A DNA stretch of 64,000 bases from contig NC_052169.1 in assembly GCF_902713615.1 (NCBI RefSeq), positions 17,628,439 to 17,692,438 of the forward strand, given 5' to 3'. This DNA is from Scyliorhinus canicula. Lineage: Eukaryota. This document shows positions 18,150 through 51,998 of the stretch, one piece after another. Made by a program: the position numbers and the translations under genes. How positions within the stretch are numbered: position 1 is the stretch's first letter; each line of letters opens with the position of its first letter. The notes beneath the pieces are model-generated. The model ran no database searches, had not been told where the DNA came from, and saw nothing but the letters and a program-made list of their open reading frames with translations.

Positions 18150-18430
18150 ACCTCCCTGGCCGTTGGCTTCTGGGGACTCTCCCGCCTTGAACAATGGGGC
18201 CAGTCCGGGAGGGTTGGCAACCCCAGCGGCGGCCGCCCGGCTTGACGGTCGTGAAGTTCTATTTTGCGACAGTATCGCCGGCCTCTCGGCCGACAGCGGT
18301 TACCCCGGCGACGGGTCCAGGGCCGGCGATGGAGGCCGCGGGCCGGGAGGGGAGTGAGTTTGTCGCTGGCTGCCGGCACTGCTGAGAGAATCTTTCACCA
18401 TTAAACCGCACCCCCCCGGCCCAACTCCCC
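18150..18430 (+). promoter_or_regulatory. CpG-rich promoter/first exon of LRRC61-like with an RFX X-box candidate
   Basis: High CpG density outside any recognised repeat; GTTACCCCGGCGAC at 18299-18312. Confidence 0.6.
18329..18353 (+). CDS. LRRC61: LRRC61-like coding exon 1 (MEAAGREG, phase 1)
   Basis: GCGATGG Kozak context in a CpG-rich segment, GTGAGT donor, phase matches exon 2. Confidence 0.75.
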
Positions 18431-18434
18431 GCCC

Positions 18435-18910
18435 TCCCTGACCCTTGTCCCTCCCTCCCTGACCCTTGTCCCTCCCTCCCTGACCCTTGTCCCTCCCTCC
18501 CTGACCCTTGTCCCTCCCTCCCTGACCCTTGTCCCTCCCTGACCCTTGTCCCTCTCTCCCTGACGCTTGCCCCCACCCTGGCCACGTGACCCTATCTCAG
18601 CACCTGACCCTTGCTTACCCTCTGACCCTGGAACCCGCTCTAAACACATGACCCTTGAACAGCCCCAGTCACTGACCCCAGAACCTCTCTGACCCTTGAC
18701 TGCACACTCACTGACCCTTGACCCCAGCCACCGTCACCTCACCCCGCTCTCCCCAGCTTCCTAACCCTGACACTGCCTCCCTCTGTCCCCAAACACCTCA
18801 CCCAACCTGCACCCTGACCGCGAAACACACCCCTCGCCTCCGGCCACCTCGCCCTGACAAACCACTCTGGCCACCTGACCCCCACACAGTCCCTCTCACC
18901 CTGGCCCCCC
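18435..18910. repeat. 21-bp repeat CCCTGACCCTTGTCCCTCCCT (~6 clean copies), then degenerate TGACCC units
   Basis: Seen directly. Confidence 0.85.
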
Positions 18911-18915
18911 TCTTT

Positions 18916-19235
18916 GGGCAGCACAGTGGTTAGCACTGCTGCTTCACAGCGGCAGGGACCCGGGTTCGATTACGGCATTGGGTGATTCATGACTTGGGTC
19001 CCTGTCTGAGCGGAGTCTACACGTTCTCCCCGTGTCTGCGTGGGTTTCCTCCGGGTGCTCCAGTTTCCTCCCACAAGTTCCGAAAGATAGGTTTGTTAGG
19101 TGAATTGGACATTCTGAATCCGTCCTCTGTGTACCCGAACAGGCGCCGTAGTATGGCGACTAGCGGCTTTTCACAGTAACTTCATTGCGGTGTTGATGTA
19201 AGCCTACTTGTGACACTAATAAAGGTTATTACTAT
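18916..19235 (+). mobile_element. V-SINE with GTGACAATAA(ATT)n tail
   Basis: Same subfamily at 8190-8497 (-), 12612-12925 (+), 43452-43741 (-), 57100-57403 (-). Confidence 0.85.
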
Positions 19236-19359
19236 TGACCAGGTGACCTGGACTCGTCCCGCCATCCCTAACGTCTTAGCATCTCTGACCAATGCCCTCC
19301 TTACTCACACCGGGCCTGCGCTTGCCTCACATTTCTTTTCTCTTTCTGTTTTCTTTCAG

Positions 19360-19455
19360 GAGATCAAAATGTAAAAATCACGGCGCAGATGCTCAAGTCA
19401 AAAACCGGACAATTTGACCTGGAGTCAATTATGCTCCTGAAGCTGAAGAATGTTG
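19360..19455 (+). CDS. LRRC61: LRRC61-like exon 2 (RDQNVKITAQMLKSKTGQFDLESIMLLKLKNV)
   Basis: Polypyrimidine tract plus CAG acceptor, GTGAGT donor; resembles the LRRC61 N-terminal motif ITxxLLKSxTGxFxLESIxLLKL. Confidence 0.9.
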
Positions 19456-20973
19456 GTGAGTAGAAGGGTAATTGGGGCAACTCTCTCAAATCCTATCAAA
19501 CTGCTGAATATTTGCGACTGCTCCAATTCCTTATGAACAAGGCTCTGGGTTAATCCCCTGAGCAAAACTAGTTTCAGTATCGCATTAATATGTTGCTCAT
19601 TCAAGTAACGCAGTTGCCAGTATGTACTCTCGTGTCTTGTACCTCCATCGCTTCCCAGAGAACTCTACAATCAATAGATTAGTGCTTGAAATTGAGTGGC
19701 GTGTTGCAGGCAAAAACTAGATTTACATCCACTCCAGAGTTAAAACCAGGCAGATAATGTGTGTTTTGAGATGGTGGTTGAGGGTTAAATGTTGTCCATG
19801 ACAACGAGAAGCCTGCTTCCCTTTGTTTGACTAACGCCACATGATCTTTTATGTCCCTGCGAGCTGGCAGATGTGGCTTCTGTTTTTTTCAGCCAAAAGT
19901 CTAATTATTACTGTAATTATCAGGTTGTTAATTAAGGATGCGTGCACTATACCTGTGTTTAATATTTAAATAGACATTATACCCTCTCACTGCTGTTTTA
20001 AATATGTGGCTGAATAAATCTGCAGGTAAACCAATTTTATCTGTGGTAACATGCTGAGTTTTTAGAGTGATGTAACCCCATAACCAGCAACGTATTGTGC
20101 TAAAATTCTAGTAATGAACTGCTCGCTTCTTCTTTCCAGCTCATCAGTGTGGGAACAAGAAGATTCCCTTTCCTTCCCATGTACTGAATGATCTGTTGAG
20201 CTGCTTGCAGAAAAATACTTTTCACTGTACCTTGGTACACGTGACAATAAACAAATCCAATCCAATCCCTCAACCGCTTACCCTTGTCGAATAATTTCTG
20301 ATTACATTTTTTAAGAAGCCCACCCTTTCCCTCTCTCTCTTCGGCTTGTCTCTCTTCTGCTCCCTCCCTTTGTTTTTCTTGATGTGGAGATGCCGGCGTT
20401 GGACTGGGGTGAGCACAGTAAGAAGTCTTACAACACCAGGTTAAAGTCCAACAGGTTTGTTTCAAACACGAGCTTTCGGAGCACGGGAGAGGGGGCAGGA
20501 AGGCAGTAAATTCGGCACAGAAGGAGACCATTCAGCCCTCCATGCCGGCGCTAGTCATGTGACTAAGCATGTCAGGATGGCAAGGCGTAAATGAGGAGCT
20601 TGTGTTATCGAACAGGTCCGACATAGTCCCACCACTGCCGAATGCCACATTGGCTCCCATCTTGCAGGCATTTTATTTTGAAACAATGAATACTAAGTTC
20701 TTGTCTCAGCTTTCAACAGTACACAGCTGGATTTTGGTGGTCAAGTTTCTTTGAGAAAATGAGACTATCCTTCACTCTGCAATATCAACTAATTATTAAT
20801 CAAATATTTGAAAAGCAAATCCAAAATTTTAAAATAGCCAAGACAGAAGAACGTTTCTTTCAAGTTTGAGGGTTTGCCAAGAATGAGTGCAAAAAGAATT
20901 AATATTTGTGGTAACAAAAACGGTAAATACTGGCCGATCTCAGCAGGTCTTGCAGTATATGTGGAGACAGAAG

Positions 20974-21016
20974 AGAGCTAACGTCTTGAGTCTGGATGGC
21001 TCTTTGTCAAAGCTCT
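20974..21016 (-). ncRNA. Minimal hammerhead motif, U3-A8 variant (decayed)
   Basis: Reverse complement AGAGCT-TTGACAA-A-GAGCC ATCCA GACTC-AAGA-CGTT-AGCTCT; 6-bp stem I. Confidence 0.6.
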
Positions 21017-21161
21017 GCTCAACTTGTCATCCCGACTCGAAACATTAGCTCCGTTCTCTCTCCACAGATGAGATTGCCCCATATTTTCTGTTTTTGTTCC
21101 GGATTCCTGTATCTGCAGTAATTTGCTTTGATCTTAATATTTGTGGTGTTGCTCGCCGCAG

Positions 21162-21308
21162 GGATTTGCAACCTTGGATGCATTGGAGACTGTGTAAACC
21201 TGGAGCGACTGGACTTATCAGGAAACAACATCTCAAACCTCACTCCCCTCGCCTCACTCAAGCTTCTCACAGTGCTCAACTTGTCAGCCAATCGGATCTC
21301 CAAACTTG
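21162..21308 (+). CDS. LRRC61: LRRC61-like exon 3 (GICNLGCIGDCVNLERLDLSGNNISNLTPLASLKLLTVLNLSANRISKL)
   Basis: Two LxxLxLSxN leucine-rich repeats, CAG/GTAAG boundaries, phase 1/1. Confidence 0.92.
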
Positions 21309-22419
21309 GTAAGCTGGCTTTCCTGGATTGTGAGCACAAAGCCTGATAAGCTTAATAACAACTAGGATGTTAAATCTCTCTGCCGATTATTTTTACCCCA
21401 ACCTGCAATTGTTTAGTAACAGTTTGGGCTGAGAGAAGCTCAGCTACAGAATGTGCTGTGTTTCCGCGTGCACTGTAACACGCCTTGATTCTCTTTTAAA
21501 TGGAGAATTCATAGCACTGCTGCCTCTCGCCGCCGAGGACCCGGGTTCGATCCTGGCCCCGGGACACTGTCCATTTGGAGTCTGCACATTCTCCTCGTGT
21601 TTGCTTGGGTCTCACCCCCACAACTCAAAAGAGGTGCAGGGTGGGTGGATTGGCTACGCTAAATTGTCCCTTAATTGGAAAAAAAATGAATTGGGTACTG
21701 TAAATTTATTTTACAAAAAGGGGAATTCCATCATGCTCTAGAAAAGCAACATTTGTACGGCCAATGCGAAAAGTGGGGTGGGGCAACAGGTGAATTGGTC
21801 TAGCAGAGAGCCAGCATGGGCACGATGTGCAGAATGGCCTGCTTCTGTGTTTCTATGATTATTCGAGATAAGAAGCTGCTCAGGACTAGACATAGGCATA
21901 TAATTCCTACAGTGCAGAAAGAGGTCATTTTGCCCATCGAGTCTGCACTGGCCCTCTGGAAGAGCACCCTACCTAGGCCCTCTTCCCCACCCTAACCCTG
22001 TAACCCCACCGAGTCTGCACACCTTTGGACACGAGAGGCAATTTAGCATGGCCAATCCCCCTAACCTGCACACCTTTGGACTGCGGGAGGAAACCGGAGG
22101 AAACCCACACGCAGACACTGGGAGAGCGTGCAGACTCCACACAGGCGAGGCTGGAATTTGAACCCGGATCCGTGGCGCTGTGAGACAGCAATGCTGACCA
22201 CCGTGCCGCCCAGTCCTCTCCCTTGCCAGCGCTTCACCTGTGCTTTCTGGTCTGCCAACTGTACAATAGAACAACTGCATGACAAACTTAATGCAAACTT
22301 CACTTCAGCAGTTCGAGGCAGGGCCCTGCTTGTCCTAATAACTGGCACAGCTGTATTGTCACTGGGTTCTTCAGCCAAATTGGCCATCAGTAACACCCTG
22401 AGCATCAGAGAGGCCTGGC

Positions 22420-22790: not shown

Positions 22791-23068
22791 GTGAACCCGG
22801 GTGATCTTTGACCTGAATTCCCCCTGATCTCCAGATCCCTTGATTTTTCTGCTGGAGACCAGGAATACCTTTCGTATTGTTCGGCTGACCTGTCCAGCAC
22901 CAAACTCTGCCGCAGTGTGATGAATGGAAACCTCAGCTTAACAGGAAATTAAGGGGGTCAAAAGGTCAATATAGGAATCAGGTGAATGAATCACGGGTTA
23001 GGGGCGCTGAGTTCCTCTGTGAAATCCAAATGAGCTGGAAAAAAAGATATATTATTTGGTGACTCCTT

Positions 23069-26325: not shown

Positions 26326-26355
26326 TGTTTGTGTCGAACCTGGGTGTCTCGGTTC

Positions 26356-29377: not shown

Positions 29378-32300
29378 CTATCTCTGATCTAAGAGGTCCA
29401 GGAAGGGTTGCCATCGCCTGAAAAACCCCTGCACCGACCCTCTCAGGGCGAATTTGATTCTTTCCAATTGGATGAAGTTTGCCATGTCGTTTAACCAGGT
29501 GTTAACACTTGGAGGTCTTGCGTCCCTCCACTGAATCAAGATCCTCCTCCGAGCCACCAAGGACGCAAAGGCTACTATTCCAGCCTCCCTCGCCTCCTGT
29601 ACCCCCGGCTCTACCCCAACCCCGAAGATCGCAAGTCCCCATCCTGGCTTGACCCTGGACCCCACCACTCTCGACACCGTCCCTGCCACCCCCCTTCCAG
29701 AACTCCTCCAGTGCCGGACATGCCCAAAACATGTGTGCATGATTCGCAGGGCTTCCCGAACATCTGACACACCTGTCTTCACCCCCGAAAAACCGACTCA
29801 TCCTTGTCCCCGTCATGTGGGCTCTATGCAGTACCTTAAATTGAATGAGACTCAGTCTCGCACATGACGACGACGAGTTGACCCTCTCTAGGGCGTCTGC
29901 CCATGTCCCATCCTCTATCTGTTCCCCCAGCTCTACCTCCCACTTGTCTTTCAACTCCACTACTGGTACCTCCTCCACCTCCTGCATAATCTTATAAATG
30001 TCCGAGATCTTCCCCTCCCCGACCCAGACCCCTGATAGCACCCTATCACTCGCCCCCCTGTCGGGAAGCACGGGAAACCCCTCTACCTGTCGTCTGGCAA
30101 ATGCCTTCACTTGGAGGTACCTGAACGTGTTCCCCGGGGGGAGCCCGAATTTCTCCTCCAGCTCTCCCAAGCTCGCAAACCTCCCCTCTATAAACAAGTC
30201 CTTCAGTTGCCTAATGCCCACCCTCTGCCAGCTCAGAAATCCCCCTCCTGTATTTCCCGGTGCAAATCTGTGGTTCCCTCTTAGTGGTGCCCTTATCAAA
30301 CCCCCCACTTCCCCCCTGTGTCGCCTCCACTGCCCCCAGATCTTGAGGGTGGCCGCCACCACCGGGCTCGTGGTATACCTCGTGAGAGGGAGCGGCCATG
30401 GTGCCGTTACCAGTGCCCCTAAGCTTATGTTGCCACAGGACGCCCTCTCCATACGCTTCCAGGCTGCCCCCTCCCCTTCCATCATCCACTTTCGTACCAT
30501 CGATGCATTTGCCGCCCAGTAATATCCTGAAAGATTGGGTAACGCCAGCCCTCCACTATCCCTACTCTGCTCCAAAAAGACCCTTCTAACTCTCGGGGTG
30601 CCATGTGCCCACACATACCCCATGATACTACTCGTTACCTTCTTGAAAAAGGCCCTGGGGAGGAAGATGGGCAGACACTGGAACAAAAACAAGAACCTCG
30701 GGAGGACCGTCATTTTAACTGACTGCACCCTCCCTGCCAGCGACAGCGGCACCATGTCCCACCTCTTAAACTCCTCCTCCATCTGTTCCACCAGCCTAGA
30801 GAAGTTCAGCTTGTGGAGGGTCCCCCAGTTCTTTGCCACCTGCACCCCCAAGTACCTGAAACTTTTTACTGCTCTTTTAAAGGGGAGCCTCCCAATTCCC
30901 TCCCCCTGGTCTCCCGAGTGTATTACAAAGACCTCACTTTTCCCCAGATTTAATTTATATCCCGAAAAGTCCCCGAACTCCGCTAGTATTTCCATAACCT
31001 CCGGCATTCCCCCCTCCGGGTCTGCCACATACAGCAACAGGTCATCCGCATAGAGCGAGACCCGATGCTCCTCCCCTCCCCTTGTCAGTCCCCTCCACCC
31101 CCCTGAACCCCTCAGTGCCATCGCTAACGGTTCAATCGCTAATGCAAAGAGTAAGGGGGATAGGGGACATCCCTGCCTAGTACCTCGATGGAGCCCAAAA
31201 TATTCTGACCTCCTCCCGTTTGTTACCACACTCGCCATCGGGGCCGAATAGAGCAACTTTACCCACTTGATAAATCCCTCCCCAAACCCAAACCTTTCCA
31301 ACGTCTCCCACAAGTATTCCCACTCCACCCTATCGAATGCCTTCTCCGCGTCTAGCGCTACCACTATCTCCGCCTCCCCCTCCACTGCCGGCATCATGAT
31401 CACGTTTAACAATCTCCGGACATTTGTGTTAAGTTGGCGTCCCTTCACGAACCCCGTCTGGTCTTCATGTATTACCCCTGGCACACAATCCTCTATCCTG
31501 GTTGCCAGGACCTTTGCTAACAGCTTGGCATCTACATTTAAGAGGGAGATAGGCCTGTAGGACCCGCACTGGACCGGGTCCTTGTCCCGCTTCAAAATCA
31601 AGGAGATCAGGGCCTGCGACATTGTTGGGGGCAAAACCCCCCCCTCGCGCGCCTCATTAAAGGCTCTCACCAGCACTGGGCCCACCAAGTCCACAAATTT
31701 CCTGTAAAACTCCACCGGGAACCCATCCGGCCCCGGCGCCTTCCCCGCCTGCATCTGGCCTATCCCTTTAATTAGCTCCTGCAGCTCTATCGGCGCCCCC
31801 AACCCTTCTACCAGCTCCCCCTGTACCTTTGGGAACCTCAATTTGTCGAGAAAGTTCTCCATTCCCCCTCTCCTCTTCGGCGGTTCAGACCTATACAATT
31901 CCCTGTAGAAGTCCCTGAAGACCCTATTCACCTCTTGCCCCTTCTGCACTACGTCCCCACCCCTCTCTCTCACTCCCCCAATCTCTCTGGCTGCATCTCG
32001 CTTACGAAGCTGGTGTGCCAGCATCCTGCTCGCCTTTTCCCCGTACTCATACGCCGCACCCTGCGCCCTTCTCCACTGCGTCTCCGCCTTCCTAGTGGTC
32101 AGTAGGTCGAACCTGGCCTGTAAACTGCGCCGCTCCCTCAGTAGCCCCTCCTCTGGTGCCGCCGCATATTTCCTATCTACTTCTAGGAGTTCCCCCACCA
32201 GCCTCTCCATTTCCTGCCTCTCCTTCCTCTCTCTGTGTGCCCTTATGGAGATCAGCTCTCCTCTAATCACTGCTTTCAGGGCCTCCCAGACCGTCCCCAC

Positions 32301-33173
32301 CTGCACCTCACCCGTGTCGTTCGTACCCAGATAGTTCTCAATGCCCGTTCTAACCCTTCTGCACACCTCTTCGTCCGCCAACAGCCCCACATCCAGGCGC
32401 CACAACGGGCGCTGATCCCGCGCCTCCCCCAATTCCACGTCCACCCAATGTGGTGCATGGTCCGATATCGCAATGGCCGAGTACTCCGTGTCCTGCACTC
32501 TCGGTATCAGCCCCCTGTTCAATACGAAAAAGTCTATCCTGGAGTACACCCTGTGGACGTGGGAGAAAAAAGAATACTCCCTCGCCCTAGGCCTACCAAA
32601 TCTCCATGGGTCTACCCCTCCCATCTGCTCCATAAACCCCCTTAACACCTCTGCCGCTGCCGGCCTCCTATTCGTCCTGGAACTCGATCTATCCAGCCCA
32701 GGGTCCAACACCGTATTAAAGTCCCCTCCCATGATCAGGCCCCCTGCCTCCAGTCCCGGGATGAGGCCCAGCAGGCGCCTCATAAAGCCCGCGTCGTCCC
32801 AATTCGGGGCATACACATTCACCAGCACCACATTCTCTCCCTGCAACCTACCCCTCACCATCACATACCTGCCCTCCTTGTCTGCCACCACTTCTGCCGC
32901 CACGAACGACACCCTCTTTCCCACCAGAAACGCCACCCCCCGGTTCTTGACATCCAAGCCTGAGTGGAACACCTGTCCCACCCACCCCCTTCTCAGGCGG
33001 ACCTGATCTGCTACCCTCAAGTGAGTCTCCTGCAACATCGCTACATCAGCCTTCAGTCCCTTCAGGTGCGAGAAGACCCTTGATCTTTTAACCGGCCCAT
33101 TCAGCCCCCTTACATTCCACGTAATCAATCGGATTGCTGGGCGACCCGTCCCTGCTCCCTGTCGATTAGCCAT
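29378..33173 (-). CDS. L1 ORF2p (APE endonuclease, reverse transcriptase, CCHC), one frameshift near 29690
   Basis: TWNVRGLN, LQETH, GGDFN, SDH; LDAEKAFD, QGCPLSP, YADD; CxxC..H....C. Confidence 0.97.
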
Positions 33174-33233
33174 GTTCTGTCCCTTGCTCGCCCCGGGTCA
33201 TCCCTCCCTTTCTGACCCGTTTCCCATAGCGAT

Positions 33234-33268
<35 letters not shown>

Positions 33269-34200
33269 AGCTCTCCCCTTCTCGTCCCTGGTCTTTCCAG
33301 CAGCAACCCGTATCTCCCCCTAACCCCCCTCCCCCCCTCCCCCCCCCTGGCTAGGACCCCTCCTAGCCGCGATGTGCCCAACATCGTACTCCCGAGAGTC
33401 AGCTGATCTCCGCTGACCCGGCTGCTCCTGCCACACTCCGACTCCTCCCGGTTCGAGGGGGGGGGAGGGACCCCCGCCATTCCACTCTGACCCCGCTCCA
33501 GCGCGGGAAAGGCCGCCATTACTGGCCACGCCCCACCCTTCTCCCCTCCTCTCTCCTCCATCCCGCGCGCGGAAAAACAGAGGAAAGCCCGCGCTTTCGC
33601 CCGGCCACACCCCGCCCCGCCATCTTCCACTCCCCCCCATCCCCATCCACGCCCGTGAAGGATCCCCTTAAAACCCCAGAGATAAACCCGCATGATCAAC
33701 CCACTCCCCCCCGTCCCGTCTTCCCAACTTAACAATATAAATACCCAATGGCAACTAAATACATAAATACTTAACTACATACTTAAATAACAAAATACTT
33801 AAATAGCTATCAACTAACAATGTGCTTAACCATCACCCTCCATCAGACAGTATAAATAACCACAGATAACCATAACCAGAGAGGGAAGAAAAAAACAAAA
33901 AAAAAGGGGACCAAACACCCGAAGAAAAAGGGGTAAAAAGGGTAAATGACTAAGGGAAGTTGGAAACGGGAAGAAACACACCATAAGAAGAAAACGACCC
34001 GCAATAGAAATTTCAACAGTTCAAATATACAGAAACACCAAACAACTCGAAACCTTCAAGATATTCAAAAAGTCAAACGTTCAAGAAAAGCCAAGCAATC
34101 CAAGAAACTGTTACCCAGCTCCGACCTGGCCTGAAAAGATAAGGGCCACTTGCTCAATCAAGAGTACCCAGGCGGCTACGACCGCCGGTGCTCCCAGGTT

Positions 34201-35105
34201 TTAGTTCATGTCCAGCTTTTCTTCTTGTACAAAGGTCCAGGCCTCCTCTGGGGACTCAAAATAATGATGTTGGTCCTTGTAGGTGACCCACAAGCGCGCC
34301 GGCTGCAGCATTCCAAATTTGATCCTCTTCGCGTGTAGCACCGCCTTCGTCCGGTTGAACCGGGCCCGCCGCTTTGCCACCTCCGCACTCCAGTCCTGGT
34401 ACACCCTTACCGTCGAGTTCTGCCACTTACTGCTTTTCTCCCTTTTGCCCACCTCAGGACTTTCTCCCGATCACATAGCCGCTGGAACCGCACCAGCACC
34501 GCCCTCGGGGGCTCGTTTGCCCTAGGCCTCCTGGCCATGACCCGGTATGCCTCTTCCAGCTCCAGGGGCGCAGGACCGGCCCCTTCCCCCATCAGGGAGC
34601 TCAGCATCTCCGCAACATATCTCGGGAGATCCGACCCCTCCAGGCCTTCTTCTAGGCCCAGGATCCTCAAATTTTTCCTCCTCATCCGAGTGTCCAGCTC
34701 CTCGAAACGGCTCTGCCACTTCAGGTGGAGTGCCTCGTGCACCTCCACCTTTGCCCCGAGGACCGTGGCCTCCTCCTCCCTCGCGGTCATCTCCTGCTGC
34801 AGCTCTCTGATCGACGCCTCTTGGGTCGCCTGGGCTCCCACCAACCTGGTGGTCGTCGCGTTCATGGACTCTAAGAGCTCCACTTTCAGCTCCGTGAAAA
34901 AACGGAGGAGAGCGGCCTGCTGCTCCTCCGCCCATTTCCTCCATCCCTCCGGAGCGCCGCCGGCCGCCATTTTGATTTTCTTCCCCCGCTTTTTTTTGGG
35001 GAGCTGCTGCCACTTTTCTTGCCGCTCCACTCCGAGTACCGACCATAAAATCGGTCTAGTTCTCCTCAGGGGACCTTCCCCCACCGGGATTCGTCTTTTC
35101 AGCAC
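34201..35105 (-). CDS. L1 ORF1p (coiled coil plus RRM/CTD), one frameshift near 34445; start codon uncertain (ATG at ~34970)
   Basis: RRKNLRILGL, PRAVLVRF, VYQDWS, FGMLQPARLWVT motifs split across two ORF-track frames. Confidence 0.9.
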
Positions 35106-36250: not shown

Positions 36251-36587
36251 GTGGGTTCTGCTTTGCCACTCTCAAGGATTAGGGTAAGGTGGGTTACCAG
36301 AAATGTCTGATCTCCCCTTGCCGGGCAGACCACGGCAGCATCTTCCGGGCGACCTTTGCCAACCCCTCACCCACCATCCTTCCTGCCGGGCAGTCTGAGC
36401 TCCTGGGGATGAAGCAGCAGTGCCACCTCCAGCTTGGAAAGAGCAGCTGATGATTGAAATCCCCTACCTCAGAGAACTTTAAAGTCAGTGATATAGACGT
36501 CACAGTGGCAAAACCTGCATTCTTTTAGCTTCTACTTACGGGAGATGATATTTAAAAAGACAAATGTGTTTTTTTTTTAAATCGTAG

Positions 36588-36648
36588 ATCCCCTCCACTC
36601 CTGTGAAAACCTGCAGAACCTAAATTTGTCAGGAAACCTAATCAGCAG
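36588..36648 (+). CDS. LRRC61: LRRC61-like exon 4 (DPLHSCENLQNLNLSGNLIS)
   Basis: TAG acceptor, GTAAAT donor, LRR motif, phase 1/2. Confidence 0.9.
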
Positions 36649-36957
36649 GTAAATCAGAAGTTATTTCCTTTGTATAGTTTGTATTGTGTTCTAGGCAGCT
36701 CCATATTTAGTCAAAGCTGCTCCGTTTAGGTGAAATGAAAATCGCTTATTGTCACAAGTAGGCTTCAAATGAAGTCACTGTGAAAAGCCCCTAGTCGCCA
36801 CATTCCGTCGTCTGTTCGGGGAGGCTAGTACGGGAATTGAACCGTGCTGCTGGCCTGCCTTGGTCTGCTTTAAAAGCCAGCAATTTAGCCCTGTGCTAAA
36901 CCAGGTGTTGCAAATTTAGGCGGAGTATTGCTTTTAACTACCTGCACTGTCCTCTAG

Positions 36958-37043
36958 TGTTGATGTGCTTCGTCCCCTCTCTGAGTTGAAGAATCTGGAG
37001 ACAATTCGATTGAAAGACACCGTTTGCAACTTCACCAATCCAG
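36958..37043 (+). CDS. LRRC61: LRRC61-like exon 5 (SVDVLRPLSELKNLETIRLKDTVCNFTNP)
   Basis: TAG/GTAATC boundaries, phase 2/1, LRR followed by the start of the NP cap. Confidence 0.9.
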
Positions 37044-37736
37044 GTAATCGATTTACACCCTCGGGTCATGGTTCAGTGTGTAGCACTCCGGCCTTTGAGT
37101 CAGAAGACTGTGGGCTCGAGTTGCGCTTCCCGAGCAGAAAATCTGGGCCAGCGCTCAGGGGAGTTATCCCCAGTGTCCTGACTTACCCCTGAACTAAAAC
37201 CACTCAAACAGATTTCTATCTGTGGGAGCTTGCTTTGCGTAAATTGGCTGCCGGGTTTTCAAGCATTCCAATGTGCTGACACTGACAGAAAATGCTTAAT
37301 CGGTGGTTAAAAACCCTTCCCTGAAGCCATGAAAGGCTCCAGATAAATGTCTCATCTTTGAAAGCAATAAAATAATTGGACAAGAATCCAGTTGATTCCT
37401 TTCCTGTTATGTTTTCTCGCCTGTGTAAGTGGCAGGATTGCAGCAGGAGATAAATCCTCGGCCTTCTATTATTTATGGTACCTTGGCTACAAATAATGAA
37501 GCAAGGTTAAAGAAAGGGTGACTCATTTCAAGCTAGTTAGTCACCATGTAATGGTGCCTGTAGCAATGTGATGCGGCACATACTTTATGTGAGATATTAA
37601 ATAGCTTTTAAAGGATAAAATAATTGCTGCTCCCATGTTCCACTGTAAAGCTCTGCGTGCTCGAACGAAATGCGAATATCTTAGATGCTGTTTTTTATGG
37701 AAAGATGTAACTGTGAGTGAAGTCTTTTGTTTTCAG

Positions 37737-37802
37737 TTTGCATGAATACATCATATCGGAGGGCCATGCTGGAAATATTTCCAAAAATCAAAGTATTAGA
37801 TG
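37737..37802 (+). CDS. LRRC61: LRRC61-like exon 6 (VCMNTSYRRAMLEIFPKIKVLD)
   Basis: TTTCAG/GTGAGT boundaries; LRRcap motif YR....FP.IKVLDG. Confidence 0.92.
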
Positions 37803-38499
37803 GTGAGTAATGAAGCCACTGGATTACCAGCTAAATGTTTTTGCTTTATCTAAGGTATTCATTTTGGACTTGCAATGAAACAGCTTTATTGATCTTCACA
37901 GGGATTGGGCCTCCCGTTATTTAGCACGCACAGATATAGGGCCGCTGAACTTAAATTCAGAAAGGCAGATTAAATTGTTAAGGACGCAACTGGTGAAGTG
38001 TCCAGAGCCAACTCCTTTCTCCCCACATCAGCCTGTCCGTGACTATGTGAGTGACTCTTATTGCCCCCTGAAGGGAATCAGCCACATTCCAGGCCAAAAG
38101 GAGAATGATTCAAGGATTCTTTTCTTTAGAGTGGTCATTTTCAAGTCCTCGGTGCCCTCTTGTCATTCCCTGATCTGTTAAGAGCATGAAGAAGTCATTT
38201 GTTTCCAGGTTGCTCCCAGGGGTACAGCTGTAGACTCTCTCTCTCTCCCCTCCCCCCCCCCCCCCCCCCCCCCCCTCCGCTCATTGTCCCTCTCCTCCCA
38301 GGGTAAGAGAGAGCTGCCTGCTCTCTGCACTGCAACCTGGTTGCTGAGAGTCTGCATCCCAACATCGTGAGCTGGGATTCCAGTGAATTCATTGAAAATA
38401 AATCCTTGTTTAGTGAGATGTACTTACTGTGTACTGACCCTACTGTGGGGCTCAAGGGCTCCGTTGAGTACCCCCCCCCCCCCCCCCCCACACAGCTGT

Positions 38500-39520
38500 C
38501 TCTCCGCCTAGACCACCCCAGCTAAAGCCGGCACTGGGTAAGCCTGATACTCTGGGATAGAGGGGCAAACCTCAGTTATAACTTGTGTTTTCAAGCCCTC
38601 AACAGAGGAACAGGAGGATGAAACTGACAGGGGCACATCAACGGAAGAGAAGGCAATAAAGGCCACAGTGGGATTGCCACTCTGTGAACCACCCTGGCTT
38701 GCCATGCCATTGTGTAAAGATTGCCAACCCATCAGTATTGTGTGGTTGTCGGCTGCACATGGCTTCCTCGCGTTGAAAGATGACACTGACAGGCCTCTAT
38801 TCGAGACACTGAAACGCCCTGAGGCGATGGACGAATGGCTTCAGGCTGTGAATCTGGAGATCTCTCGGCACAGATCCGTGTGTAGACGGTGAATTCCTGA
38901 TGGTCGCTGAGCCCTTGGTTTCAGACAGAAGTGACCCCCTGGCAGCAGGACCCACCGAACAGACCTTTCTGGGGCCCCCTCTGCTCCCCTTGCTCGAGGA
39001 AAGGGTGTCCCAAACATGGGCGGTCCCAAACTGCTCTGACCGATAAAACTACACCCAGTGGGATCCTCACCCGTGTGGTCGAAAAGACGATAAAACACGT
39101 GAATTTCTGTTTGTGGTACGTGCGCACATTTATGGATAATCAAAACAGTGAATGCTCTGCAAATGCCATCGTTTCTCGGATGCTTACACAATATAATGCT
39201 GACATCTGTGATGCCCAAGTCTCTGCAGAAGGCGAACAGTGTGAACCTACCTTTACCTTTGATTGAACCTGTAAAGGGGCTGGTTTAGTTCAATTGTCTG
39301 GACAGCTGGTTTCATGATGCAGAGCGAGGCCAACAGCGCGGGTTCAATTCCCGTATCGGCTGAGGTTATTAACCTTCTCAACCTTGGCACTTGCCTGACG
39401 TGTGCTAATCCTCAGTTATATCACCAGCAGTCACCTCTCCCTCTCAAAGGAGAGAGCATCTGGGATTATGGCGACTTTACCTTTTACCTAAAGTCAGGGA
39501 GTGATTATTTTTCTCTACAG
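38500..39520 (+). mobile_element. RTE-clade LINE 5' fragment (UTR plus endonuclease start), with a SINE at ~39276-39485
   Basis: NFCLWYVRTFMDNQNSE..AIVSRMLTQYNADI resembles RTE WNVRTLMD...IVARELxRYNIDI. Confidence 0.6.
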
Positions 39521-39788
39521 TAATCGCACAGAAAGCAAATGAAACAGAAAAGCTCCATCTTAAATCAGAGAGCCATTTGTGATCAAACTTCTCATTCCTC
39601 TCTGTGCCGTCGCAGTCATCAGTTGTTACGGTGCTGTTCAGAGCTACGTCTTTCTATTCTTGATCTAAAATAATTCAAGCTGTGTATTGAATTATTTTGT
39701 TTCTTCCCATTTAATTAAAAATTAAAGTATCGGGATACTCGGCAACTGTGGTTTGGAAAGTGCAGCTTCTCTTCTGTTTTGTCCGCAG

Positions 39789-39857
39789 GGGAGAGGATGT
39801 CAGGCAGTGGTAGAGATTTGTACCAGGTCTGCAAAGATATGGATTCTTCTCTGAAAG
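39789..39857 (+). CDS. LRRC61: LRRC61-like exon 7 (GERMSGSGRDLYQVCKDMDSSLK)
   Basis: CAG/GTTTGG boundaries; resembles LRRC61 GERVxGxGxxxYQLCRDLDSSL. Confidence 0.9.
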
Positions 39858-40060
39858 GTTTGGTGCCTTTTCGTTATAATATTGTTGCGATGTGTAAATG
39901 AACGGGCGTTTCCCTGGAGGTGCTCGCAGAGACATTGACCAAACTCGGAAGTGTGTTTTGACGCTGGTGTGCTGAGTGGGGTTCCCGTCGTCCCAGTCAA
40001 GTTTATATCTCCAGTGGCCCTGCTGTCAGGTCACACTTATTCCACGTTTTCAGAAGTGTG

Positions 40061-42967: not shown

Positions 42968-43751
42968 CGGCAAGACCTTCTTACAGAGTGATACAGCACC
43001 GATGGTGGCCTTCGGCTCATCAGGTGTGTGCTTTGCTTGCAACTTTCTATAGTCTGTTCCCAGGTAGTTATTGTGCAGTACGCTCATATTTTGGCCTTGT
43101 TTTTGTGACGCTGTTGTCTATCATTCCAAATCTAACTGAGCATCGGCTGTTTTTTGTTAGACTTAATTGCTTGTTCTGGTGCTTATGAAATTGAGGGCAA
43201 ATTTCCTGGGCTTGCTATCCTCCTCACAATCCTCTGTTGGTCGTGTTTTTGGGCAGGTTTTCTCCAGTGTTATTGATTCTGCTCCTTCGCCTGCACTGAC
43301 AACACTTTCAGTGTTTTGACAACACTGCAGAAGCAGCACTGCACCAAATCACACTGAGACACTTAGAATATTCCAATACTGCACCAAAACACACCAGGAC
43401 ATTGATAATCCACCAATACTGACCAAAACACAGACGCTTACAATCCTCCAATAATAATCTTTTTAATCACAAGTAGGCTTACATTAACATTGCAATGAAG
43501 TTAATGTGAAAATCCCCCAGTCACCACATTCTGGCACCTGCACACTGAGGGAGAATTCAGAAAGTCCAAATTACATAACAAGCACGTCTTGTGGGACTTG
43601 TGGGAGGAAACCGGAGCACTCGGAGGAAACCCACAGAGACATAGGGAGAACATGCAGACTCCGCACAGAGAGTGACCCAAGCCGGGAATTGAACCTTGGG
43701 CCCTGGCGCTGTAAAGCAACAGTGCTCCCACTGTGCTGCCCAATACAGCAG

Positions 43752-45168
43752 CAAAACACACCGAGACACACACACCCCTCAAATACTGCACCAAAACACA
43801 CCGAGACACTTACACCCCTCCAATACTGCACCAAAACACACTGAGATATTTACACCCCTCCAATACTGCGCCAAAACACACCGAGACACGTACACCCCTC
43901 CAACACTGCACCAAAACACACCGAGACACGTACACCCCTCCAACACTGCACCAAAACACACCGAGACACGTACACCCCTCCAATACTGCACCAAAACACA
44001 CCGAGACACGTACACCCCTCCAACACTGCACCAAAACACACCGAGACACACACACCCCTCCAATACTGCGACAAAACACACCGAGACACTTACACCCCTC
44101 CAATACTGCGACAAAACACACCGAGACACACACACCCCTCCAATACTGCACCAAAACACACCGAGACACACACACCCCTCCAATACTGCACCAAAACACA
44201 CCGAGACACGTACACCCCTCCAACACTGCACCAAAACAAACCGAGACACACACACCCCTCTAATACTGCACCAAAACACACCGAGACACGTACACCCCTC
44301 CAATACTGCGACAAAACACACCGAGACACTTACACCCCTCCAATATGGCACCAAAACACACCGAGACACACACACCCCTCCAATACTGCACCAAAACACA
44401 CCGAGACACAAACACCCCTCCAATACTGCACCAAAACACACCGAGACACACACACCCCTCCAATATGGCACCAAAACACACCGAGACACTTACACCCCTC
44501 CAATACTGCACCAAAACACACCGAGACACGTACACCCCTCCAATACTGCACCAAAACACACCGAGACACACACACCCCTCCAATACTGCACCAAAACACA
44601 CCGAGACACGTACACCCCTCCAATATGGCACCAAAACACACCGAGACACGTACACCCCTCCAACACTGCACCAAAACACACCGAGACACACACACCCCTC
44701 CAATACTGCACCAAAACACACCGAGACACACACACCCCTCCAATACTGCGACAAAACACACCGAGACACATACACCCCTCCAATACTGCACCAAAACACA
44801 CCGAGATACATACACTCCTCCAATACTGCACCAAAACACACCAAGACACATACACCCCTCCAATACTGCACCAAAACACACCGAGACACACACACCCCTC
44901 CAATATGGCACCAAAACACACCAAGACACATAAACCCCTCCAATACTGCACCAAAACACACCGAGACACACACACCCCTCCAATACTGCACCAAAACACA
45001 CCGAGACACGTACACCCCTCCAACACTGCACCAAAACACACCGAGACACGTACACCCCTCCAATACTGCACCAAAACACATCGAGACACACACACCCCTC
45101 CAATATGGCACCAAAACACACCGAGACACACACACCCCTCCAATACTGCACCAAAACACACCGAGACA
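43752..45168. repeat. 40-bp minisatellite, ~35 copies, indel-free
   Basis: CCGAGACACGTACACCCCTCCAATACTGCACCAAAACACA in exact register. Confidence 0.97.
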
Positions 45169-48107
45169 TTCCGCGCGCACGCCGCCCCCACCCCCCTCCC
45201 CCACGATTGCTGCTGTTGCTGACATTTTAATTTTCCTCAAGAAATTCGACGAACGGCTGCCACCTTCGAGCGAACCCTAGCGCTGACCCTCTTAAGGCCA
45301 ACTTTATTTCCTCGAGGCTGAGAAACCCAGCCATGACGTTAACGCAAGTCTCTACACTCGGGGGCTTCGAGTCCCTCCACATTAATAAAATCCGTCTCCG
45401 GGCTACTAGGGAGGCAAAGGCCAAGACGTCCGCCTATTTTGCCCCCTGAACTCCCGGGTATTCCGACACTCCAAAGATCGCGATCTCTAGACTCGGCACC
45501 ACCCGTGTGTTAAGCACCTTGGACATTGCCCTCACGAACTCTTGCCAGAACACTCTAAAAGCTCCGGGCATGCCCAAAACATATGGACATGGTTTGCAGG
45601 GCTGCCCTTGCACCTCATACAACTGTCTTCTATACCAAAAAACTTGCTCATTCTCGCTGCCGTCATGTGTGCCCAGTGGACCACCTTAAATTGAATTAGA
45701 CTGAGCCTGGCACATGATGAGGAGGAATTAACCCTGCCCAGGACCTCTGCCCACAGACCCGCTTCCAACTCCTCACCTAAGCTCCTCCTCCCACTTGCCC
45801 TTGAGCTCCTCCACCGGGGTTTCCTCCACCTCCTGTAGATATGCGAAGCCCTCCCCTCCCCCACCCAGGTGCCGGAGACCACCCTGTCCTGTACCCTCAG
45901 TGGTGGCAGCTTCGGAAAGGCTACTACCTGTTTTTTCAGGAAGGCTCGTACTTGCAGATATTTAAAGACGTTTCCTGGCAGCAGATTAAATTTGTCCTCT
46001 AGCGCCTGGGTAAGCTTCCTTTTATGAACAGATCTCCCATCCTTCTGAGGCCTGCCCTCTGCCAGCTCTGGAACCCACCATCCATCCTACCCGGGACAAA
46101 CCTGTGGTTGTTGCATATCGGGGTCCAGACCGACGCTCCTTCCACCTTCTTGTACCTCCTCCATTGTCCCTAGATCCGCAGTGTCGCCACCACAACCACT
46201 GGACTTTTGGAATAACGGGTCGGCGAGAACGGCAAAGGAGCCGTTTTCAAAGCCCCCAGACTAGTATCTTTACATGACTCCGCCACCAGCTGTTCCCACG
46301 CCTTTTAAAGTCCCCTTCCATTTGCTCCACCAACCGGGTCAGGTTGAGCCTGTGCAGGGCATCCCATTTCCTGGCCACCTGTATACCCAGGTAACAAAAA
46401 CTTTTCTCTACCATCCTGAGCTGCAGCTCTTTCAGTCTCTCCTCCTGCCCCTTGACCTGGATCACTCGCTCTTTCCCATGTTCAGTTTGTACACTGAAAA
46501 ACTACCAAAATCCCTCAGGATCCGCGGAACCTCCCCCATCCCCTCCACAGGGTCCAAAATGTACAGGAGCCATAGCTAGTGGTTCTATAGCTAGGGCAAA
46601 TAGTAACGGGGAGAGGGGACACCCCTGCCTCGTTCCCCAGTGAAGTTCGAAGTACCCCAACCTCAGCCGGTTTGTACATACGCTTGCTACAGGCGCCTGG
46701 TACAGCAATTTCACCCAGCCAATAAAGCCCTCACCAAACCCGAACCTTCCCAGCGTTTCCCACAGGTACTCCCACTCCACCCGGTCAAAGGCTTTCTCTG
46801 CGTCCATCGCTGTTACCACCTCCACCTCCCCTCCCTCTGAGGGCATCATAATAATATTCAAAAGTCTCCGGACATTGATATTAAGTTGTCTGCCTTTAAC
46901 AAACCCAGTCTGGTCTTCCTCCATCACCCCTGGGACGCAATCCTCAATTCTTGTGGCCAGAATCTTAGCTAGCAATTTGGCATCCACGTTTAAAAGCGAA
47001 ATCAGCCTGTATGACCCGCAATGTTCCAGGTCCTTCCCTCGTTTAAGAACGAGTGAGATTAAAGCCTGTGACATTGTTGGGGGGAGGGTTCCTTTCTCTC
47101 TAGCCTCATTGAAGGTCCTCATCAGGAGTGGGCTTAATATTTCCAAAAATTTCTTATAGAATTCTACCTGGTAACCGTCCGGCCCCAGGGCTTTACCCGA
47201 CTGCATGCCCTCTGTACCCTTGACAATCTCCCCCAATTCAATCAGTGCCCCCAGCCCCTCCACCAAGTCCTCTTCCTCCTTTGCAAACCTCAACTGGTCC
47301 AAAAATTGCCTCACCCCTTCAGCTCCCGTCGGGGGCTCCGACTCGTATAGTTTACTGTAGAATTCTTAAAAGACTCCGTTCAACCCCCCTGGATCCAAGA
47401 CCGTGTTACCCTCCTTATTCTTTACGCCCCCGATTTCCCTGGCCGCCTCCCTCTTTTGCAGTAGGTGTGCCAGCATTCTACTCGCTTTCTCCCCGTACTC
47501 ATAGACTGCCCCCCTTGCCTTCCTCAGCTGTGCTACTGTTTTCCCCGTGGTCAGCAGTTCAAACTCCGCCTGCAGACTCCGCCGCTCCCTCAGTAGCCCC
47601 GCCTCGGGGGGCCTCCGCGTATCTCCTGTCCACTCTGAGTATCTCCTCCGCCAGTCTCTCCCTCTCCACTCTTTCTCTCTTTCCCCTATGGGATCGAATT
47701 GAGATGATTTCCCCTTTGACAACTGCCTTCAGAGCCTCCCAGACCGTTGCCGCTGCTACCTCACCCGTATCGTTTGTTTCCAGGTAATCCTGGATGTTCC
47801 TGCTAATCCGCCCGCAAACCTCTTTGTCCGCCAGCAGCCCCACATTCAGTCTTCAGAGTGGGCGCTGCCCTCTCTCCTCACTAAGCCGCAGGTCCACCCA
47901 GTGCGGGGCATGGTCCGAGACTGTGATTGCTGAGTATTCTGTCCCCGCCACCTTTGGGATTAACGCCCTGCTCAACCCCATGATCAGGTGGTGTGACTAT
48001 AAATCCGGGATTTTGCCTAGCATGCGCCTCATAAATTCCACATCATCCCAATTCGGAGCATAGACGTTCACAAACACCACCAGGATCCCCTCCCACTTTC
48101 CACTACA
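45169..48107 (-). mobile_element. 5'-truncated, degenerate L1 (ORF2 endonuclease to C-terminus)
   Basis: ORF pieces homologous to the full-length copy (YEYGEKASR, DAEKAFD, QGCPLSP). Confidence 0.92.
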
Positions 48108-48594: not shown

Positions 48595-49245
48595 GGCCGG
48601 GATTCTCCAAAACTGGGGCTATGTCCTCCATGCCTGCCAGAAAACGGGCGCGAATCATTCCAGACTTTTTACAAAGTCAGGAGTGTTTATCCGATGTCAA
48701 GAGGGAGAGCAGGGTCCCGGCATGGTCCCGCAGCTCCTGCTGCCGATACGGGGCCCTGCACTAATGACCGTGGGTCCACGCGGCAGCCATTTTCGCGCAG
48801 GCCCCCGCGCAACATGGCGGAGCCACACAGCGGGCCGGCGCAAAAGAAGATAGCCCCCCCCCCCCGGATCAAGCGCGCCAGCCGATCGGTAGCCCCCGAT
48901 TACGGGCCTGGTCATCGTGGAGGCCGCTCCTGGAGTCTGCCCCCCCCCCCCCCCCCCCCCCCCCCCAACCAGGAACGGCCACTGCAGCCGAGACGGCGAG
49001 CTCCCGCTGGGTGAAACCATACGGGAACCACGCCGGCGGAACTCGGCGGGGACCCAGCCAGACGACCAAGGAGAATCACCACGGGGGCCTCCTTTCAACG
49101 GCCCCCGACCGGTACTGCGTCGACCGCGCACGCACAGCTGACGGGCGATTCTCCAGTCGCCAGAGAATCGCGTCCCGGCGTCGGACCCGATCGCGGGTCT
49201 GCCGACCCATTCCCCTCCCCTGCGCCAAGCACGATTCTCTCCGCA
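48595..49245. mobile_element. GC-rich MITE inside a SINE
   Basis: Starts GGCCGGGATTCTCC; reverse-complement similar to 40061-40566. Confidence 0.72.
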
Positions 49246-50451
49246 ACCCCATGCATTGATCATGGCCAACCCACCTAACCTGCACACCTTTAGACCGTGG
49301 GAGCAAGCCGGAGCACCCAGAGAAATCCCACGTGGACACGGGGAGAATATGAAAACTCCACACAGTTACCCAAGGCCGGAATCGAACCTGGGTCCCTGGT
49401 GCTGTAAGGCACCAGTGCTTACCACTGTGCTAGCCTTCCTGAACTGCTGCAGCCCATGTAGTGCAGGAACACCCACAGTACGGCTAGGAAGGGAATTCCA
49501 GGATTTTGACCCAGCTACAGTGATATAGGGCTAATACATGTTGGTGTGTCGCTTGGACGGAACTTGCAAGCGGTGGTGTTGCCCTTGTCCCTCTAGGCGA
49601 TAAAGGCTGCAGGTTTGGACGGATTACGAAGGTTCTTTAGGAGAGTTGTTGCAGTGGGTCTTGTAGATGGTACACTCTGCTGCTACTGTGTGCCGCCGGT
49701 GGTGGGGTGGGTGGGGGGGGGGGGGGGGGGGGGGGGGTGAATATTTGAGCAATTCCATAGGATTAACCACATAAAATGATATAATACACCAAAATAATTA
49801 GCATGACTCGCTGTGGCTCAGTGAGTGGCAGCGCCCTCATTTCTGAGTCACAACATCGGCAAGTGTTTCAATCATCAGATCCAGGCTGACGCTTCAGCGC
49901 AGTGTTGGGTGCCCTCGAGCCCCATCTGCCCACGCAAGCGGTGTTAAAAATCTCACGTCGCCATCTAAGGAAGAGCAGGATCGATTTACCTGGTCCCAGG
50001 GCCAATATTAATCCCTCAACCAGCATCGCTAAAACTGGTCATTATCGCAACTGGCTGTTTGTGGTAGTTTACAGTGCGCACATTGACTGCTGTGTTTCCG
50101 TGGGGTGGGACTGTGGTTAGCACTGCTGCCTCACATCTCCAAGGACCCGGGTTCAATTCCGGCCTCGGGTCACTGTCTGTGTGGAGTTTGCACGTTCTCC
50201 CCATGTTTGCATAGGTTTCCTCCGGGTGCTCCGGTTTCCTCACGCGGTCTAAAGATGTGCAGGTTAGGTGGATTGGCCATGATAAATTGCCCCTTAGTGT
50301 CCAAAATTTTAAGTGGGGTTACTGGGTTACGGGGATAGGGTTGAGGTGTGGGCTTAAGTAGGGTGCTCTTTCCAAGGGCCGGTGCAGGCTCGATGGGTCA
50401 AATGGCCTCCTTCTGCACTGTAAATTCTGCACTATAAATCCTATGTTCTAT

Positions 50452-50940
50452 CACACAAAAGACACAGGAGCAGAATTAGGCTATTCGGCCCATCGAATCT
50501 GCTCCGCCAATCAACCAACCATGGCTGATATTTTTCTCATCCCCATTCTCCTGCCTTTTCCCCATAACCCCTGATCCCCTTATTAATCAAGAACCTACCT
50601 AGCTCTGTCTTAACGACACTCAGTGATTTGGCCTCCACAGCCTTCTGCGGCAAAGAGTTCCACAGATTCACCACCCTCTGGCTGAAGAAATTCCTCCTCA
50701 TCTCTGTTTTAAAGGATTGTCCCTTCAGTCTGAGATGGTGTCCTCTGGTTCTAGTTTTTCCTACAAGTGGAAACATCCTCTCCACGTCCACTCTATCCAG
50801 GCCTCGCAGTATCCTGTAAGTTTCAATAAGGTCCCCCCTCATCCTTCTAAACTCCAACGAATACAGACCCAGAGTCCTCAACCGTTCCTCATCCAAGTTC
50901 TTAATTCCAGGGATCATTCTTGTGAACTTCCTCTGGACCC
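50452..50940 (-). mobile_element. CR1 3' fragment
   Basis: LGLYSLEFRRMRGDLIETY...RRNFFSQRVV. Confidence 0.88.
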
Positions 50941-50970
50941 CACACGGTGTGGACTTGTTTGGGACATGAG

Positions 50971-51589
50971 GGGCGGGATTCTCCAACGGGTCGGAGAATC
51001 GCTGGGAGGGGGGGGGGGGGGGTCAGCGTGAGTGCCGCTCCGACGCTGGCTGCCGAATTCTCCGCTGCCGGCTTTCGGGCGGGGGCGGGAATCACGCCAT
51101 GCCAGTTGGGGGCCGTTGGCAGCCCCCCCCCCCCCCGGCAACTCTCCGGGCCCCGATGGGCCGAGCGGCCACCCATTTTCGGCTAGTCCCGCCGGCGTGA
51201 AATAGACATGGTCCATCCCGACAGGACCTGGCTTGGAGGGCAGCTAGCGGAGTCCTCGGGGGTGGGGTTACCGGGTCCCACCGATCTGCGGGCGGGCCTG
51301 TGCCATGGGGGCATTCTTTCCCTCCGTGCCGGCCTCTGTAAGGCTCAGCCATGGCCGGCGTGGAGAAGAAACCCCCTGCGCACGCGATGGAAATACGCCG
51401 ACAGTTCTGCGCATGCGCCAACTCGCGCCAGCCCACGGCGGCCCTTCGGCGCCGGTTGGCACGCCGTCGGCCTAGCCCCTGGAAGTGCGGAGGATTCCTC
51501 AACTTCCGGCCGGCCCGACGCCAGAGAGGTTCGCGCTGCTCTTGCCGCCGGCGTCGGGCCGTCCCGCCAATTGCGGGAGAATCCCAGCC
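50971..51589. mobile_element. GC-rich MITE
   Basis: GGGCGGGATTCTCC ... GGAGAATCCCAGCC, flanked by GAG on both sides. Confidence 0.8.
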
Positions 51590-51641
51590 GAGGAATTTGT
51601 GAGGGGCGCTATTTAAATTAAGGTTTGTTTTTTATTTTCAG

Positions 51642-51764
51642 ACATGTGCAGCAGGGGCCCTATTGGTGGACGACCCGGTCCTATGAAGTGGGTTGAGGAC
51701 AGTTACTGGAAGCTCAAACCAACGTCGAAAACTCAGTCTGACAAAGCCGTGGAGCAGTTTTATA
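51642..51764 (+). CDS. LRRC61: LRRC61-like exon 8 (DMCSRGPIGGRPGPMKWVEDSYWKLKPTSKTQSDKAVEQFY)
   Basis: TTTTCAG/GTAAGG boundaries, WVExxYW motif, phase 1/1. Confidence 0.88.
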
Positions 51765-51912
51765 GTAAGGGTTACTGTTTTTGCTCCTGTGCAATTTGGT
51801 GTTGGAGCATCTGATTCCATTTTAAATGTCGTTCAGCACAGTATCCTTCTTAAAAGATCAAATATTTTGTGGACTGATTCTGACTGGACCTTTCCTTATT
51901 TTTGTCACACAG

Positions 51913-51998
51913 ATATTTTGAAAGAATGCAGGGAGCTCAACAATAAGGCTGCTGATATCATAGCAAACACAGAAAGGAACATCAGCAATGTAAAGTAA
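51913..51998 (+). CDS. LRRC61: LRRC61-like terminal exon 9 (NILKECRELNNKAADIIANTERNISNVK*)
   Basis: CAG acceptor, TAA stop; the nine exons sum to 759 nt = 252 aa with no internal stop. Confidence 0.88.

Follow-up and report, generated by a model that had tools for sequence, protein, structure and literature searches.

Orphan retrogenes are functional genes that carry no introns in one lineage and correspond to a multi-exon ortholog in outgroups, the retrogene having settled elsewhere in the genome and its parent being absent wherever the retrogene exists. Such genes have been described in a survey of the human genome (Ciomborowska et al. 2013, PMC3548309) and for SYCP1 in amphioxus (PMC5803294). 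The gene considered here, LRRC61, lies in a 64,000-nucleotide window of the catshark Scyliorhinus canicula (RefSeq assembly GCF_902713615.1, contig NC_052169.1, positions 17,628,439 to 17,692,438 of the forward strand), where it occupies positions 18329-51998 of the window, counted from its first letter, as a nine-exon gene. The same combination of a multi-exon gene in outgroups and an intron-free gene at another locus appears to hold for LRRC61, yet the 25 human orphan retrogenes that the published survey lists do not include it (PMC3548309). That survey compared human with chicken and worm (PMC3548309), and LRRC61 would have escaped it because a replacement older than birds is invisible to a human-chicken design. 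No paper linking LRRC61 to retroposition was found in the literature searched. The catshark gene very probably retains the form inherited by jawed vertebrates, whereas in tetrapods a retrocopy located elsewhere would have replaced the parent gene, with the parent since lost.

The catshark protein belongs to the LRRC61 family of vertebrates and, judging from its name, its place in the tree and its neighbours, its gene is the same gene. The difference lies in gene structure: the genes of catshark, ray and ray-finned fishes have eight coding introns, the amphibian coding sequence (CDS) has none, and the human gene on chromosome 7 has three exons. A wider circle of leucine-rich repeat (LRR) proteins of cilia and nucleus, namely DRC3, PPP1R42, DNAAF11/LRRC6 and ANP32, has the same fold class as the catshark protein over residues about 12-190, with SDS22-type repeats of 22 residues followed by a cap. 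However, these proteins are only 18-25% identical to catshark LRRC61 and differ in length and in their tails, and are thus relatives in fold that belong to another family.

The LRRC61 gene of the catshark

The coding exons of catshark LRRC61 all lie on the + strand of the window. Exon 1 starts with the ATG and supplies 25 nucleotides of CDS (18329-18353) ahead of a GTGAGT donor; it is followed by exon 2 (19360-19455, 96 nucleotides, phase 1) and by exon 3 (21162-21308, 147 nucleotides), which encodes two LRRs and gives a Pfam LRR_4 match on its own. Exons 4 (36588-36648, 61 nucleotides), 5 (36958-37043, 86 nucleotides, phase 2), 6 (37737-37802, 66 nucleotides, encoding the region of the LRR cap) and 7 (39789-39857, 69 nucleotides) come next, and the CDS is completed by exon 8 (51642-51764, 123 nucleotides) and exon 9 (51913-51998, 86 nucleotides), with a TAA codon at 51996-51998. 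Joined, the nine exons form a CDS of 759 nucleotides that encodes 252 amino acids plus TAA, the entry phases of exons 1-9 being 0,1,1,1,2,1,1,1,1. All of the introns are of the GT..AG type, a pyrimidine-rich tract and AG precede each of exons 2-9, and introns 1-8 measure about 1.0, 1.7, 15.3, 0.3, 0.7, 2.0, 11.8 and 0.15 kb. The 3' untranslated region (UTR) extends for about 0.6 kb, with an AATAAA at 52614; a 943-nucleotide transcript contig (X1) has about 596 nucleotides left beyond the stop codon.

These coordinates come from a manual reconstruction of the gene, and an independent exact spliced mapper supplied with the NCBI protein returned the same ones. The 252-residue model is identical, residue for residue, to NCBI XP_038640361.1, which bears the name LRRC61; the gene is thus already annotated under that name in RefSeq, and is not new. 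The NCBI protein was retrieved, at 136 bits (exactly the score predicted from the model), by a profile of six exon peptides, the first row of which was an unrelated, genome-unique open reading frame (ORF) of 147 amino acids, antisense to LRRC61 in intron 6, that served only, as a workaround, to set the length window. Searches with single exons were less informative. For instance, the best 150 matches of exon 3 alone among protein representatives were giant multi-repeat LRR proteins, which accumulate score over their many repeats, with no LRRC61 among them, exon 8 alone gave no usable match in the protein atlas, and a 103-residue open stretch around exon 9, of which the last 40 residues were scored, had no homologous candidate in that size range.

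Evidence for splicing comes from catshark RNA, namely the raw reads of three oligo-dT runs and one transcript assembly, with which the region 36400-40000 was covered. The GT..AG joint 36648/36958 between exons 4 and 5 is spanned by 11 reads in the three runs and by a transcript contig, the joint 37043/37737 between exons 5 and 6 by 9 reads and a contig, and the joint 37802/39789 between exons 6 and 7 by 1 read and by contig X1, whose depth is about 130. Beyond 39857, contig X1 continues for 30 bases that correspond to the start of exon 8 (51642-51671) with 29/30 identity. Four of the eight junctions (4-5, 5-6, 6-7 and 7-8) are therefore confirmed by RNA, from the covered region and the loose end of the contig, and every spliced read has the orientation that + strand RNA should give in a reverse-stranded library. 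Raw RNA depth on the LRRC61 exons is low, at 0.7 to 6 reads. The catshark gene is expressed and spliced as modelled.

Three further observations concern the transcripts. At position 51661 in exon 8, contig X1 has a G where the genome has an A, which would change residue 190 from Ile to Val, and this is probably a polymorphism between individuals. In Chiloscyllium, a 203-residue LRRC61 isoform lacks exactly exons 4 and 5 (61 + 86 = 147 nucleotides, in frame), and with them two repeats; annotated isoforms of 202-208 residues in four other elasmobranchs (three sharks and one skate) could represent this form too. Lastly, a short repeat in intron 4 (36642-36900) is covered very deeply by RNA from both strands, with hundreds of reads per run, many variant positions and a summed contig depth of >100,000. 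Most of its reads continue into unrelated sequence, and it looks like a highly transcribed family resembling short interspersed elements (SINEs), outside the LRRC61 transcript.

A full-length search with the catshark protein found 170 relatives, and the 120 listed are all vertebrate, named LRRC61, LRRC61-like, or hypothetical or unnamed products; they include sharks, rays, a chimaera, many ray-finned fishes, the coelacanth, a caecilian and a newt, with LRRC61 of mammals, birds and frogs ranking below these 120. Among the matches listed, identity to the amphibian, fish and shark entries is 53-88%, reaching 83-88% for other sharks, and an alignment of 35 vertebrate LRRC61 proteins has 40 invariant columns. 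By fold and sequence, LRRC61 of mouse, cow and human takes the first three ranks in the AlphaFold Swiss-Prot set, with an identity of 45-46% across 248-254 aligned residues and E about 1e-24, each collinear with the catshark protein from N- to C-terminus, whereas from rank 4 onward the matches are other LRR families at 18-25% identity and E about 1e-10. Judged by its sequence, with full-length similarity, domain build and a single-copy tree in agreement, the catshark protein belongs to the LRRC61 orthologous group.

Residues 39-164 match Pfam LRR_9 at 47.8 bits against a cut-off of 30.5, and an AlphaFold model built from the alignment of 35 relatives has a mean predicted local distance difference test (pLDDT) of 82, with the repeats above 90. 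The N-terminal part is predicted to be a solenoid of SDS22-type LRRs with an LRR cap (residues about 12-165), and the model continues with a helix at 169-187 and a disordered linker before it ends in a long helix at 213-251. Such a build is that of a protein-protein adaptor, a putative function that is read from the fold.

An earlier note on this DNA had described nine GT-AG exons with consistent phases that join into an intact 252-residue protein, and had called the gene LRRC61-like. The nine-exon observation is real, coordinates and exon count both being reproduced by the hand rebuild, the spliced mapper and the RefSeq identity, and the RNA check of junctions that the note had proposed, run on 36400-40000, returned the four junctions given above. 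The assignment holds as well, from the NCBI name and from the reviewed LRRC61 proteins, which are by far the best matches; a grouping with a different LRR family, which the note had considered fatal to its proposal, is not the case, other LRR families being at most 25% identical.

LRRC61 across vertebrates and its proposed retroposition

The annotated LRRC61 proteins of sawfish, fugu, medaka and sturgeon were placed on their loci by the exact spliced mapper. From exon 1 to exon 9, the coding lengths in nucleotides are 22/96/147/61/86/66/69/123/86 in the sawfish, 28/96/147/61/86/66/69/126/107 in fugu, 31/96/147/61/86/66/69/126/107 in medaka and 28/99/147/61/86/66/69/123/107 in the sturgeon. Exon 2 is thus 96 nucleotides in all but the sturgeon (99), exon 3 is 147 nucleotides in five of five species, and all eight intron positions and phases are common to the five species mapped, the catshark included.

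In the catshark window, LRRC61 is preceded by a divergent gene on the - strand, whose first coding exon (5150-5100) encodes 17 residues and ends in a GTAAG donor. These residues are identical to the start of the 187-residue EF-hand gene upstream of medaka LRRC61, which has the same donor. We take this gene to be CIB2, from gene order and from the human CIB2 N-terminus. Downstream, on the + strand, tblastn with the 5' part of sawfish Iso_dh located the first three coding exons of IDH3A, with the start codon at 58341, exon 2 at about 60095-60184 and exon 3 at about 63004-63100. LRRC61 therefore lies 13 kb from CIB2, from which it diverges, and 6.3 kb ahead of IDH3A, which is on the same strand.

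A similar arrangement is found in the other fishes. The gene in fugu (+ strand) has RabGAP-TBC, SH2 and EF-hand (- strand) genes upstream and Iso_dh (+ strand) and DnaJ genes downstream; in the sturgeon, an EF-hand gene (- strand) lies upstream and Iso_dh downstream; in medaka, an EF-hand gene (- strand) lies upstream and DnaJ downstream; and in the sawfish, where the upstream flank is outside the view, Iso_dh lies downstream. An EF-hand gene is thus present in all three fishes with that flank in view. The fugu EF-hand gene is annotated with another first exon (198 residues in all) than the MGNKQTIF start of medaka and catshark. Because the nine-exon form is common to shark, ray, sturgeon and teleosts, next to an EF-hand gene, Iso_dh or both in each, a nine-exon LRRC61 between CIB2 and IDH3A is, as far as these comparisons of sequence reach, the ancestral state of jawed vertebrates.

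In amphibians, the structure is different. The gene span returned by the annotation look-up counts every base between start and stop codon, those of introns as well, as seen in the fish loci, and for LRRC61 it is 801 nucleotides for 266 residues in Microcaecilia and 783 nucleotides for 260 residues in both Lissotriton and Pleurodeles (two assemblies), which is in each case 3 x (residues + 1). Since the span is exactly three times the codon count, the LRRC61 CDS is intron-free in the caecilian and the two newts. No insertion or deletion interrupts the amphibian proteins at seven of the eight fish intron positions; immediately ahead of the seventh position, every row shown has a gap in the alignment.

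For human LRRC61, the CDS presumably lies wholly in one exon, with both introns in the 5' UTR. Three exons on chromosome 7 make up the human gene, and C7orf29 lies within its second intron (PMC3192792); in frog, platypus and several mammals, LRRC61 is immediately preceded by C7orf29 or its frog relative ZBEDX (PMC3606216). In cattle, the gene order TBC1D2B, SH2D7, CIB2, IDH3A, ACSBG1, DNAJA4 has been reported, a list in which LRRC61 does not appear (PMC7655849), and the order in fugu is the same apart from LRRC61. A literature search for LRRC61, CIB2 and IDH3A together returned only unrelated gene lists.

A maximum-likelihood tree of 35 LRRC61 proteins from chondrichthyans, ray-finned fishes, the coelacanth and amphibians, which is unrooted, follows the species tree, with chondrichthyans set against ray-finned fishes and a group of coelacanth and amphibians. 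Branch supports are 100/99 for chondrichthyans, 100/98 for ray-finned fishes and 97/78 for sarcopterygians, and no branch is unusually long: the one leading to coelacanth and amphibians measures 0.049, versus 0.16 for ray-finned fishes and 0.13 for chondrichthyans. A single LRRC61 was found in every species examined. The catshark genome yielded no second match to LRRC61 exon 3, and with caecilian LRRC61 as the query the only real matches in that genome were the exons in the window, the others being generic LRR stretches with E >0.001.

How, then, would the two forms be related? In the lineage to tetrapods, an LRRC61 messenger RNA would have been reverse-transcribed and inserted elsewhere, at the locus that is shared with C7orf29/ZBED6CL from frog to human (7q36 in human). 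The retrocopy would have taken over, and loss of the parent from between CIB2 and IDH3A would have left these two genes as direct neighbours. The event would be younger than the divergence of ray-finned fishes and older than the most recent ancestor shared by living amphibians and amniotes. We infer retroposition as the mechanism, and likewise the timing of parent loss. The gene left its conserved neighbours, lost eight coding introns together and appeared at a new locus with its protein intact, the old site closing up behind it, as expected of a retrocopy whose parent was lost. It is likely, with somewhat less confidence than for the replacement as such, that every land vertebrate has in LRRC61 an orphan retrogene missing from the catalogues: a complementary DNA (cDNA) copy made before amphibians and amniotes separated that was inserted beside a domesticated ZBED transposase gene (C7orf29/ZBED6CL), gained 5' exons there and replaced its nine-exon parent, whose loss brought CIB2 and IDH3A into a head-to-head arrangement. 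The features by which orphan retrogenes are recognised can be followed here in part from the loci and in part from the literature. The introns of the parent are absent from the derived CDS in amphibians, and the ancestral multi-exon state is present in shark, ray, sturgeon and two teleosts; that the copy would stand at another locus and the parent be gone comes from the literature, which places the human gene on chromosome 7 with C7orf29 and shows CIB2 and IDH3A adjacent in cattle. A poly(A) remnant or a target-site duplication is unlikely to survive several hundred million years.

Four points weigh against a retrocopy that replaced its parent. The single human coding exon is presumed, PMC3192792 giving only three exons in all; the tetrapod state is known here from the amphibian coding spans and from papers; the tree is not independently rooted, having no outgroup; and the neighbourhood varies, with no Iso_dh between LRRC61 and DnaJ in medaka.

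The second of these points leaves some room for a different history, in which tetrapod LRRC61 continues the DNA lineage of the fish gene, a chromosomal rearrangement having moved it and its introns having been removed in place, for instance by recombination with its own cDNA. Loss of introns through cDNA recombination is a known process, and the view of the tetrapod locus is drawn from coding spans and papers. However, three amphibians lack all eight coding introns at once, and no old neighbour moved along with the gene, the mammalian order TBC1D2B-SH2D7-CIB2-IDH3A-ACSBG1-DNAJA4 being intact apart from LRRC61. Relocation with intron loss is less economical, since a lone gene that leaves without its flanks and introns is what retroposition produces, and we consider it very unlikely.

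The lack of a root bears on another possibility, that the fish-type and tetrapod-type genes are ancient paralogs, older than jawed vertebrates, that were lost reciprocally. The two forms do stand in different loci, and in an unrooted tree of three groups a root on the sarcopterygian branch is formally possible. Such a history would nevertheless require at least three independent losses, would leave the absence of all eight introns in the tetrapod copy unexplained, and sits poorly with the short branch to coelacanth and amphibians, with the single LRRC61 of every species examined and with the lack of a second catshark copy; its probability is, if anything, smaller still. That open frames were joined by chance into the nine-exon model, or that the gene is a decaying pseudogene, for which only the low RNA depth on the exons could speak, is ruled out by the spliced reads and the deep contig, by an intact frame identical to the RefSeq protein, and by conservation, both in other sharks and in the columns that are invariant among 35 vertebrates.

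Replacement by a retrocopy, with loss of the parent, is also what the earlier note had proposed, leaving it undecided whether the catshark gene was the ancestral locus or an old paralog. The proposal is supported by the intron-free amphibian CDS and by the adjacency of CIB2 and IDH3A in cattle, and of its two options the ancestral locus is the one that stands. The old paralog is disfavoured by the agreement between gene tree and species tree, in which amphibians pair with the coelacanth, and by the search for a second, intronless copy that the note had suggested, which found none in the catshark genome. The position it had given to the gene was borne out, with the EF-hand exon upstream on the - strand and IDH3A downstream on the + strand, and the synteny comparison it had called for found the EF-hand gene in fugu, medaka and sturgeon and Iso_dh in sawfish, fugu and sturgeon. 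Retention of the parent in cartilaginous fish, which the note had also claimed, is seen in shark and ray, but it is not confined to them, as ray-finned fishes keep the gene too.

Repeats and mobile elements in the window

Debris of SINEs and long interspersed elements (LINEs) is abundant in the LRRC61 introns. Intron 3 contains, on the - strand and thus antisense to LRRC61, a LINE at 29502-35105 with an uninterrupted ORF2 of 1223 amino acids (endonuclease and reverse transcriptase, 29502-33173) and, upstream of it, an ORF1-like frame of 232 amino acids (34407-35105). This element looks young, and may be intact. A decayed copy of it is present in intron 7 (45250-48100).

Long satellite-like tandem arrays lie at 43500-45250, also in intron 7, and at 2550-4200. 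They are open in several frames on both strands, with ORFs of up to 508-551 amino acids composed of His/Thr/Pro-rich or Cys/Val-rich repeats, and have a strong negative GC skew. In the case of IDH3A intron 1 (58400-60100), a G-rich tandem repeat directly follows exon 1, with a GC content of 0.635 and a GC skew of +0.83, and contains proline-rich ORFs of 650-690 amino acids on the - strand. On the + strand, ORFs at 100-450 and 56260-56781 encode a GIY-YIG-like motif (..YIGET..), of a kind that is typical of Penelope-like elements, and the first of them is near a hammerhead ribozyme at 809-846.

Implications for the LRRC61 family

The gene itself is ordinary and annotated, and what the locus adds is evolutionary: an apparently clean and very old replacement of a parent gene by its retrocopy, in a pattern that is visible to anyone comparing public annotations. 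Both states, the multi-exon parent and the intron-free copy, can still be observed in living vertebrates, and the catshark locus represents what the parent looked like. If true, the replacement would explain why the LRRC61 CDS of tetrapods is intron-free, why the gene shares its site with a domesticated transposase gene, and how the head-to-head pair of CIB2 and IDH3A in mammals originated. The regulatory context of LRRC61 would then not be transferable from fishes to mammals, even though the protein is orthologous.

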